From Salpingoeca rosetta (lineage: Eukaryota; Protista; Choanoflagellata), in assembly GCA_033442325.1 (NCBI GenBank), contig JAWQFM010000025.1, positions 1,004,467 to 1,041,348 of the forward strand: 36,882 nucleotides of DNA, written 5' to 3'. How positions within the stretch are numbered: the first letter of the stretch is position 1; every line of letters starts with the position of its first letter. The notes below the pieces were generated by a model, which ran no database searches, was not told the DNA's origin, and was given only the letters and a program-made list of their open reading frames with translations. Shown here in pieces: positions 29,031 through 31,091 of this stretch. A program made the position numbers and the translations under genes.

Positions 29031-31091
29031 ATGGCTGACCAGCGACTGACGCACGGCGTGTCCGTGGCAGCTGTGCGGCGGTTCCTGGATGACCTGAAGC
29101 GCGAGTTCCCCGACACGTACACTGAGATGACGACGGAGGATGCTTGCAAGCAACTGGTTGTGCCACGCACCCGCCAGGACAACTGCGCCTACGTCGAGCA
29201 CCTGCGCAAGCAGTCGCCAGAACACGTGAACAAGGCCACCGTGTTTGTGTCGCACGCATGGCGGTACAAGATCGCAGACGTGCTCAACGTCTTGCTGGAG
29301 TTTGCAGAGGAGCAAGCAAGGAAGGGCGACGCCCAGCCAGTGTTTTTCTGGTTTGACCTCTTCATGAACAACCAAAACGCCAACGTCACGGCCAACCTTC
29401 CACCAGAGTGGTGCGTTTTGTGTGTGTGTGTGTGTGTGTGTGTGTGTGTGTGTGTGTGTGTGTGTGTGTGTGTGTGTGTGTGTGTGTGTGTGTGTGTGTG
29501 TGTGTGTGTGTGTGTGATACTTGCGCTCTTCAGCAACCATTGCCACCACGCACACAGACACACGCACACTGTTCCCTCACGAAACTGCAACCCCTTCCCC
29601 TTTCCTCCCTGTCTTCCTCTTCCCTCGATCCTTTCCTCTCCCCCTTTCCCTTTCTCAACACCCAGGTGGAGCACGACGTTCAAGCAGTCGATTGCCAACA
29701 TTGGCCATGTGCTGCTGGTGCTCATGCCGTGGCGAGACCCCGTGCCACTGACGCGCGCGTGGTGTTTGTGGGAGATCTTCTGCGGCATCAGCAACGAGGG
29801 CACAGAGGTCACCATCCAACTACCCAACAGCGAAGAACAGGCACTCGAGAACGCCATTCGCGACAGCTACAAAGCCGTGACAGACACGCTGGTGCGCGTG
29901 CAGGCAGAGCGAGCCGACGCCTTCAACCCGCACGACAAACACATGATCTTCACGGCGATCGAGTCGTGGGCGGGTGGCTTCGGCGCAGTCAACCAGGCCG
30001 TGAAGGACCAGCTGCGCGCGTGGTGCTTGCAAAAGGCGGTGGGCGCCGTCGAAGCCATGCGAGCTCGAGGCGAGGACAGCACTGCCGCCTTCGCGGGGCT
30101 GTGCCTCAACGTTGGGTCGGTGCTGAACGACTTTGGCGAGCACGATCGCGCCGTTGCCTACTACGAGACAGCGCTGCCGATTTACCTCCGCACTGAGGGG
30201 GAGAAGGGGAGGAACGTGGCGGTGTCGTACAACAACCTCGGCAACGCGTACGCCGACAAGGGCGAGTACGACAGAGCCATCCAGCTGTACGAGAAGGCCC
30301 TCGCCATCACGGTTGAGGCGCTTGGGGAGAAGCACCCAAGAACAGCCAACACCTACAACAACCTCGGCATCGCCTACAGGAACAAGGGCGACTTCGACAG
30401 AGCGATTGAGCAGTACGAGAAGGCGCTCGCCATCAAGGGGGAGACGCTGGGCGAGAAGCACCCAAGCACAGCGAGCACCTTCAACAACCTCGGCAGCGCC
30501 TACTACAGCAAGGGCGACTACGACAGGGCGATTGCGTTTTATGAGAAGGCGCTCGCCATCTACGTGGAGACGTTGGGCGAGAAGCACCCGAGCACGGCAA
30601 TGACGTACAACAACCTCGGCAGCGCCTACAACAACAAGGGCGAGTACGACAAGGCGATTGCGTTTTACGAGAAGGCCCTCGCTGCCTTCGTGGAGACTCT
30701 TGGCGAGAAGCACCCGAGCACGGCCATGTCGTACTTCAACATTGGCCTGCTGCACGACAAGCGCGGTGACAAGGAGCAGGCCTGCGCCTACATGCAGCGG
30801 GCCCTCGACGGTTACACAAGCACGGTCGGCCCAGACCACCCAGACACGCGCGACGCGGAGCGCGAACTGCGGCGCATTCGCGGCAACGACGAGCCCGTTG
30901 ACGGCGGTGCACGCACTGGCGGCGCCCTGGGCGAGGAAGAGAACGAGCAGAAGCAGCAAGAAGGAAGCGGCGGTGACGACAACATGACCAGCCAGGACTG
31001 GGCTGTGCTTGTGCTTTGTTGTCCATGTCTTGTTGCTGCTTTGCCTTTCCTCTGCATCTACTCCTGCGTGAAGAGCGTGTGTCAGAAGTGA
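29031..31091 (+). CDS. TPR-repeat protein, 601 aa: HET/TIR-like N-terminal domain, six 42-aa kinesin-light-chain-type TPRs, Cys-rich hydrophobic tail
   Basis: Exons 29031-29410 and 29666-31091 around a 255-nt GT-AG intron. Motifs ATVFVSHAWRY, FWFDLFMNNQ, WWSTTF, LTRAWCLWEI. Repeats YNNLG.AY..KG.YD.AI..YEKAL.I..E.LGEKHPST. Tail WAVLVLCCPCLVAALPFLCIYSCVKSVCQK. Confidence 0.92.
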   Translation: MADQRLTHGVSVAAVRRFLDDLKREFPDTYTEMTTEDACKQLVVPRTRQDNCAYVEHLRKQSPEHVNKATVFVSHAWRYKIADVLNVLLEFAEEQARKGDAQPVFFWFDLFMNNQNANVTANLPPEWCVLCVCVCVCVCVCVCVCVCVCVCVCVCVCVCVCVILALFSNHCHHAHRHTHTVPSRNCNPFPFPPCLPLPSILSSPPFPFSTPRWSTTFKQSIANIGHVLLVLMPWRDPVPLTRAWCLWEIFCGISNEGTEVTIQLPNSEEQALENAIRDSYKAVTDTLVRVQAERADAFNPHDKHMIFTAIESWAGGFGAVNQAVKDQLRAWCLQKAVGAVEAMRARGEDSTAAFAGLCLNVGSVLNDFGEHDRAVAYYETALPIYLRTEGEKGRNVAVSYNNLGNAYADKGEYDRAIQLYEKALAITVEALGEKHPRTANTYNNLGIAYRNKGDFDRAIEQYEKALAIKGETLGEKHPSTASTFNNLGSAYYSKGDYDRAIAFYEKALAIYVETLGEKHPSTAMTYNNLGSAYNNKGEYDKAIAFYEKALAAFVETLGEKHPSTAMSYFNIGLLHDKRGDKEQACAYMQRALDGYTSTVGPDHPDTRDAERELRRIRGNDEPVDGGARTGGALGEEENEQKQQEGSGGDDNMTSQDWAVLVLCCPCLVAALPFLCIYSCVKSVCQK
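30093..30848 (+). repeat. Six tandem 126-bp coding units (42-aa TPRs); the inner four are highly similar
   Basis: acaacctcggca recurs at 126-bp spacing, as does gagaagcaccc. Confidence 0.95.

Follow-up and report, generated by a model that had tools for sequence, protein, structure and literature searches.

A divergent TIR-superfamily domain joined directly to kinesin-light-chain-type repeats in the choanoflagellate Salpingoeca rosetta: a plausible sensor-enzyme missed by standard domain models

We analysed a stretch of 36,882 nucleotides from the genome of the choanoflagellate Salpingoeca rosetta (assembly GCA_033442325.1, contig JAWQFM010000025.1, or C25); this whole stretch is referred to here as the window, and positions are given in window coordinates. 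The subject is a forward-strand gene that an initial annotation had taken for a single open reading frame (ORF) of 686 amino acids (aa), and for a candidate innate-immune receptor in which an effector domain of HET or TIR type leads directly into tetratricopeptide repeats (TPRs). The gene consists of two exons with a 601-aa product in four parts—a helical N-terminal subdomain, a divergent TIR-superfamily domain, six TPRs of the kinesin-light-chain (KLC) type, and a Cys-rich hydrophobic tail.

The ORF does exist (29031–31091, +), although it reads through an intron and is not the true product. Exon 1 (29031–29410) encodes aa 1–126 and two bases of codon 127, and its product comprises the N-terminal helical subdomain together with strands A and B of the TIR-like core. 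A 255-nucleotide (nt) intron with GTGCGT...CAG borders follows (29411–29665), carrying a perfect (TG)49 microsatellite (29419–29516), evident in the sequence and reported by Tandem Repeats Finder (TRF); exon 2 (29666–31091) runs from the last base of codon 127 to the stop codon at 31089–31091. The intron is in frame, being a multiple of three in length and free of stops, so that an ORF search that ignores splicing runs the exons together and gains 85 spurious residues. These intron-coded residues, 128–212 of the ORF, form a CVCVCV... run and a proline-rich stretch; they are absent from the database protein P0001, which is identical to the spliced translation of the two exons and is annotated only as 'mbre TPR repeat protein'. 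The same exon break position is found in 29/29 fetched paralogue loci that contain both exons. Searches were run with P0001, with the read-through ORF, and with the exons separately.

The initial annotation had singled out three motifs in the N-terminal part, and all three are located in the sequence, on the forward strand. FVSHAW (aa 72–77; 29244–29261) lies at the end of strand A, FWFDLFMNNQ (aa 106–115; 29346–29375) spans strand B and the following loop, and TRAWCLWEI (aa 156–164; 29751–29777) lies at the start of helix C, where it carries W159-x-x-x-E163. The proposed catalytic Glu is intact in CLWE (W159-C-L-W-E163), its GAG codon at 29772–29774. In SARM1, AbTir, and plant TIRs, the catalytic motif is a W-x-x-x-E located where helix C begins. 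The motif residues are nearly invariant in a family profile of 182 domains gathered by profile search: in the first motif S74 is kept in 179, H75 in 180, and W77 in 181 domains; in the second, W107 in 178, D109 in 180, and Q115 in 177; and in the third, R157 in 180, W159 in 180, C160 in 179, and the candidate catalytic E163 in 180. The two Glu-less domains, each an additional copy in a multi-domain protein, have Asp instead. FVSHAW, WFD, and R-[AS]-W-C-L-[WF]-E are kept in 32/32 intact S. rosetta paralogues retrieved, as well as in four distant metagenome homologues; conservation of the Glu across intact paralogues, on which the initial annotation had laid weight, is thus borne out. Two metagenome proteins, P0038 and P0043, contain two or three copies of the domain, and in each of them one copy, which resembles a pseudo-enzyme partner, has lost signature residues (Glu to Asp); the divergent copy of P0038 has lost SHAW too.

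An AlphaFold model of the read-through protein has a predicted local distance difference test score (pLDDT) above 90 everywhere outside the intron-coded insert. The insert was modelled as a long helix and spoiled the Foldseek comparison of this model, which was discarded; the intronless domain of a metagenome homologue, P0034 (L035:3321-4106), was therefore folded instead. With 95 sequences this domain reached a pLDDT of 94.8 and a predicted template modelling score (pTM) of 0.91. Foldseek against the Protein Data Bank (PDB) returned only TIR domains among the top 12 matches, the best being RPP1 (E 5.7e-3, probability 0.95). The VIA wide search (all-against-representatives) matched MyD88 (Z 6.8, 3.7 Å, 120/138 residues), SARM1 (Z 6.6), and Hydra TRR-2 (Z 6.5); its top 23 were TIR, ThsB, or nucleoside deoxyribosyltransferase, except for an uncharacterised Enterococcus protein at rank 4. 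A second-look structure comparison gave SARM1 (Z 7.0, 4.1 Å, 120/138), AbTir (Z 6.9, 3.3 Å, 115/134, 17% identity), and the SPARTA TIR (Z 6.7), and its top 37 matches were all TIR. The matches to TIR cover model residues 67–255, and the first ~65 residues form an extra helical subdomain. In the S. rosetta gene the TIR-like core and its helical C-terminal extension, delimited by AlphaFold and the structural matches, occupy 29226–30080 (+; spliced aa ~66–265, interrupted by the intron). As every Z falls below 8, the fold argument rests on the uniformity of the match list and not on single scores; on the predicted structures, the fold of the N-terminal domain is of TIR type, and standard domain models fail to detect it. 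The question of whether this domain is TIR- or HET-like at all is thereby answered, at the level of structure comparison, in favour of a TIR-type fold.

TIR folds also occur in proteins that assemble without catalysis, and the TIR-like domain could be a module of this sort, comparable to MyD88 and the TIRs of animal TLRs: homotypic oligomers would recruit proteins at the membrane, and the conserved residues would serve packing and interfaces. In the wide search, the TIR domains of MyD88, IL-1RAcP, TIRAP, and TRIF reach scores on a par with those of enzymatic TIRs, which speaks for such a module, as do the adaptor-like HET signalling proposed by Dyrka et al. (PMC4986451) and the lack of any reported HET enzyme activity (PMC12881547). 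The distribution of the conserved residues points the other way—polar residues kept in at least 177/182 domains (S74, H75, D109, Q115, R157, E163) sit where strands end and where helix C begins, which is the pattern of an active site and not of an interface. Additionally, the best second-look matches are enzymatic TIRs, and the W-x-x-x-E of the family is the motif with which SARM1, AbTir, and plant TIRs perform catalysis; we consider a purely structural role unlikely.

Sequence models say little directly about the N-terminal ~265 aa, which have no Pfam or PADLOC match at E<=10, whether the query was exon 1, the read-through, or the first 151 residues encoded by exon 2. A PDB sequence search with the read-through matched only the microsatellite-coded CVCV stretch, and an ESM Atlas search limited to named non-TPR clusters gave no usable match. 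Two homologues have sub-threshold matches to the Pfam TIR_2 model (14.0 and 17.1 bits, where the cut-off is 28; E 0.071 and 0.0078), and both begin at model position 1 on FVSHAW, in the correct register. Alignment of the 182 family domains with a profile of 16 bona fide S. rosetta TIR_2 domains by hhalign extends from strand A to strand C with P 1e-4 and a probability of 58%; a column-reversed control gave P 0.33, and a 5-sequence family profile P 0.025. The family Glu falls on the sole invariant column of the 16 TIR_2 domains, also a Glu, in both the extended alignment and the 5-sequence hhalign run, with low posterior confidence. Searched against PDB sequences, the family profile aligned with the bacterial TIR 3h16_A, placing DIFISHAW...VWYDDFS over FVSHAW...FWFDLFS, at a non-significant E of 0.49.

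These figures also bear on whether the likeness to TIR is one of kinship. The domain might belong to an unrelated new family that shares with TIR only a generic three-layer alpha/beta sandwich, as could be argued from Z scores that all lie below 8, Foldseek E values above 0.001, the missing Pfam match, and an hhalign probability of just 58%. We hold this to be highly improbable: the top 37 second-look matches are exclusively TIR, with CheY and flavodoxin absent from the structure lists, and independent sequence signals agree in register—TIR_2 position 1 on FVSHAW, the 3h16_A alignment, and the hhalign P of 1e-4 against 0.33. The alignment of the family Glu with the TIR Glu likewise argues against an unrelated fold.

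The three motifs bring to mind the fungal HET domain (PF06985), which mediates cell death in heterokaryon-incompatibility proteins and in HET-NACHT-WD/TPR nucleotide-binding oligomerisation domain-like receptors (NLRs). The block consensus of HET is ALSYxW-like, WIDxxCINQ-like, and RxWxLQE-like. FVSHAW, WFDLFxNNQ, and RAWCLWE would correspond to these blocks, in the same order and with comparable spacing: an S-x-x-W follows strand A, a W-x-D...N-Q follows strand B, and helix C carries R-x-W-x-L-x-E. The two domains are also similar in size, with HET at ~220–240 aa (PMC12881547). HET is remotely homologous to TIR from strand A to helix C, and the similarity fades beyond helix C (PMC4986451), which is much the span found in our own hhalign comparison. 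PSI-BLAST from HET-e1 had found homologues in choanoflagellates, stramenopiles, and haptophytes (PMC4986451), the groups to which the nearest clusters of the present family belong. Figure 6 of that paper includes one S. rosetta HET homologue, which may belong to this TPR-fused family; the HET domain itself has no known structure (PMC12881547). In contrast to the fungal proteins, the domain here leads straight into TPRs without an intervening NACHT or NB-ARC, and Pfam HET does not match it; PF06985 is absent from the precomputed domain lists of 37/37 word-search matches, and the model run against the whole genome gave no candidate, in a search whose controls were uninformative. Kinship with HET would accordingly rest on motif resemblance and one 2014 paper (PMC4986451). 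Because Pfam HET has no match and the published S. rosetta sequence is only a possible member of this family, we class the domain as a TIR-superfamily domain whose motifs resemble those of HET, and not as a member of Pfam HET or TIR. What stands of the proposed HET/TIR-like effector domain is therefore the TIR-type fold, from structure matches; the Pfam HET match does not, and the effector function is predicted.

Downstream of the motifs lie six KLC-type TPRs of 42 residues (aa 267–533; 30084–30884, +), the number given by the initial annotation, each of Pfam TPR_12 (E 7.5e-98, 321 bits) and TPR_10 (E 2.8e-71, 234 bits) matching in six stretches. The four central units are a tandem array at the DNA level (30226–30734, +; TRF period 126 nt, 4 copies, 83% matches) and are 64–81% identical to one another as protein, with a few hypervariable positions. 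Motif counts put the number of TPRs among close paralogues at roughly 5 to 13; the description of the array as variable therefore holds for copy number between paralogues as well as for its repetitive units. The protein ends in a Cys-rich hydrophobic tail (aa 572–601; 30999–31088, +), predicted to be a tail anchor or a palmitoylation region, and the highest 19-residue Kyte-Doolittle mean of the protein (2.69) falls within it, at aa 573–591. Close paralogues (P0002–P0024) share the N-terminal domain and the TPRs, and have three alternative C-termini—a PH domain, a CCaaX box (GGCCSVL, RCCSIL), or a Cys-rich hydrophobic tail—each of which predicts membrane attachment.

There is no STAND NTPase between effector and repeats, as the initial annotation had noted. 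P0001 has no Walker A motif, and neither NACHT nor NB-ARC is present in this protein, in the 63 top homologues, or in the 7 largest homologues, the last of which are tandem [domain + TPR] units. A reading of the protein as an NLR was rejected, since it has no P-loop. Direct fusion of the domain to TPRs is the family norm, as 58/63 top homologues carry TPR_12.

The family is large and widely spread. By profile search the family comprises 8,328 protein clusters at E<=1e-3, and 1,843 when the limit is set at E<=1e-30; the ESM-Atlas clusters nearest to the domain come from diatoms, oomycetes, and haptophytes, and one strong match comes from a chytrid fungus, where it is annotated 'Kinesin light chain 3'. 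Judged by these sequence matches, this is a very large eukaryotic family. The sole match in the bacterial and archaeal genome collection is L066, on contig JAIYDP010000031.1 of a Verrucomicrobiaceae metagenome-assembled genome (MAG; 34% identity, residues 26–251), which may be a eukaryotic contig binned into the MAG or may reflect transfer.

In the genome of S. rosetta itself, exon 1 has at least 64 matches, some of which are partial and three of which contain a stop. The N-terminal domains of the 24 closest paralogues have a median identity of 85%, and copies that are near-identical, fragmentary, or stop-containing also exist. Among the 12 closest paralogues (>=88% identical in exon 1), 11 are no more than 80 kb from the end of a contig (binomial p ~1.6e-7 if positions were uniform); the closest paralogues are on contigs C2, C4, C7, C11, C20, C24, C25, C30, C33, and C36 (G000). 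No telomere repeats (TTAGGG) were found at eight contig ends near paralogues, two of which are ribosomal DNA (rDNA), and the location therefore cannot be called subtelomeric. One locus, L002 (G000:C33:34637-38014), duplicates the 5' region, exon 1, and ~160 nt of the intron at 98% identity, with no exon 2; the copy is joined, in inverted order, to sequence that precedes the assembly gap upstream of the gene in this window. P0033 is a chimeric gene model that also contains the first 45 codons.

Expansion of this kind need not concern immunity. The family could comprise membrane-associated nucleotide or nucleoside hydrolases, or trafficking adaptors whose KLC-like TPRs bind cargo, and could have expanded for ordinary cell-biological reasons. 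Nucleoside 2-deoxyribosyltransferases are among the structural matches (Z 5.0–5.8), the TPRs are of the kinesin-light-chain type (as the annotation of the chytrid member reflects), and the membrane-targeting devices of the paralogues are ordinary ones; all of this would suit such a function. Set against it are a large lineage-specific expansion with near-identical copies, fragments, and stop-containing copies, the clustering of young copies near contig ends, and TPR units that are repeat-homogenised, variable in number, and hypervariable at a few positions. Taken together, the expansion, the contig-end clustering, and the TPR variation are more in keeping with a contingency or defence repertoire than with a housekeeping gene, and we regard a non-immune family as quite unlikely.

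A run of N (27997–28908) forms an assembly gap directly upstream of the gene, leaving the promoter region incomplete, and another (31992–32097) lies ~0.9 kb downstream. About 7 kb upstream are two TIR_2-like segments on the reverse strand (21148–21471 and 21655–21975), 473-nt tandem copies that are 100% identical; each shares ~44% identity with an S. rosetta TIR subfamily and is short of ~9–15 core residues relative to intact paralogues. They reflect either very recent duplication or an artefact of the assembly, and are possibly degenerate. The TIR_2 model itself has no match within the window, and a simple LRR-consensus scan of the window gave no convincing leucine-rich repeat (LRR). Of the decaying LRR-TIR pieces among which the gene was said to lie, there is thus the one duplicated TIR-like fragment, but not the LRR part. 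Elsewhere in the genome, the loci L044, L046, L049, and L054 form a bona fide TIR_2 subfamily with HET-like SYSWG... and CWIDI... motifs, which may be intermediate between canonical TIR and HET-type sequences.

Considering the evidence jointly, we read the protein as a TIR-type enzyme that uses E163 on NAD+ or a related nucleotide, is gated by its TPRs, assembles at the membrane, and belongs to a fast-turnover defence or non-self repertoire; we put the probability of this reading at roughly one half. The TPR array would keep the TIR-like domain inactive until a ligand is bound; binding would then let TIR-like domains assemble on the membrane and form an active site around E163, which would cleave NAD+ or a related nucleotide. 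The resulting nucleotide signal, or the loss of NAD+, would lead to cell arrest or death, and the setting of the protein would be a fast-turnover defence or non-self repertoire. We infer the NADase activity, the sensing by TPRs, and the immune role.

Several results weigh against the proposed TIR-type sensor-enzyme. Pfam TIR and TIR_2 (PF01582, PF13676) have no match at E<=10 on the N-terminal domain or on 4 intronless metagenome homologue domains, and Pfam HET has none at E<=10 on the protein or on 14 homologue domains scanned alone. All structural Z scores lie below 8, a level that the tool's own note calls common for unrelated folds; the P0034 domain model has only four clear core strands, no clearly present strand E, and a second half that is helical, unlike canonical TIRs. 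The HET domain has no known enzymatic activity (PMC10197012, PMC12881547), and the conservation of the N-terminal domain among close paralogues fits an effector without proving one.

Among known systems, the proposed enzyme resembles the enzymatic TIRs (SARM1, AbTir, SPARTA TIR-APAZ, RPP1, RUN1, ThsB), which are its best structural matches (Z 6.0–7.0 over 115–138 residues) and share a W-x-x-x-E on helix C with its Glu conserved; with the bacterial TIR 3h16_A it shares a nearly identical strand-A motif. It differs from them in the extra ~65-aa helical N-terminal subdomain, the helical second half, and Pfam TIR/TIR_2 scores below threshold, and its activity is only predicted. In overall design it resembles SARM1 (ARM repeats–SAM–TIR) and plant TNP (TIR–NB-ARC-like–TPR), which likewise combine a TIR-type effector and a helical-repeat regulatory or sensor region in one chain; SARM1 also has no STAND NTPase. 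In contrast to these two, the TIR-like domain here comes first, followed by the TPRs, there is neither a SAM oligomeriser nor an NB-ARC, and the predicted route to the membrane is through a tail anchor, a CCaaX box, or a PH domain. The repeats resemble those of fungal NLRs with highly conserved TPR_10-type repeats, being 42-residue KLC-type units with high internal identity and variable number (PMC4986451); however, the nucleotide-binding oligomerisation domain of those receptors is missing here.

A further reading would make the family a pan-eukaryotic, membrane-tethered class of TIR/HET-type nucleotide-cleaving sensors that has no STAND NTPase and is missed by domain models—the protist counterpart or ancestor of the fungal HET cell-death domain. 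We regard this as possible but rather doubtful. That TIR and HET are linked, and that a choanoflagellate has HET homologues, was already published in 2014 (PMC4986451). Our literature searches found no description of the direct TPR fusion without an NTPase, of the size and spread of the family, of an invariant W-x-x-x-E on a confident TIR-fold model, or of the alternative membrane tails.

An immune-type sensor-enzyme role for this protein is plausible. Surveys of choanoflagellate immunity that are based on Pfam would overlook its family, which is nonetheless abundant, with its 8,328 clusters distributed over diatoms, oomycetes, haptophytes, chytrids, and choanoflagellates. If the family is indeed the counterpart or ancestor of HET, it would supply the first predicted active site for the HET domain, together with a tractable model in S. 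rosetta. TIR enzymes connect the immune systems of bacteria, plants, and animals; should the Glu-dependent activity prove real, the present family would be a large overlooked branch of TIR-type effectors in eukaryotic innate immunity, and would offer a sensor-effector design without an NTPase switch in a genetically tractable relative of animals.

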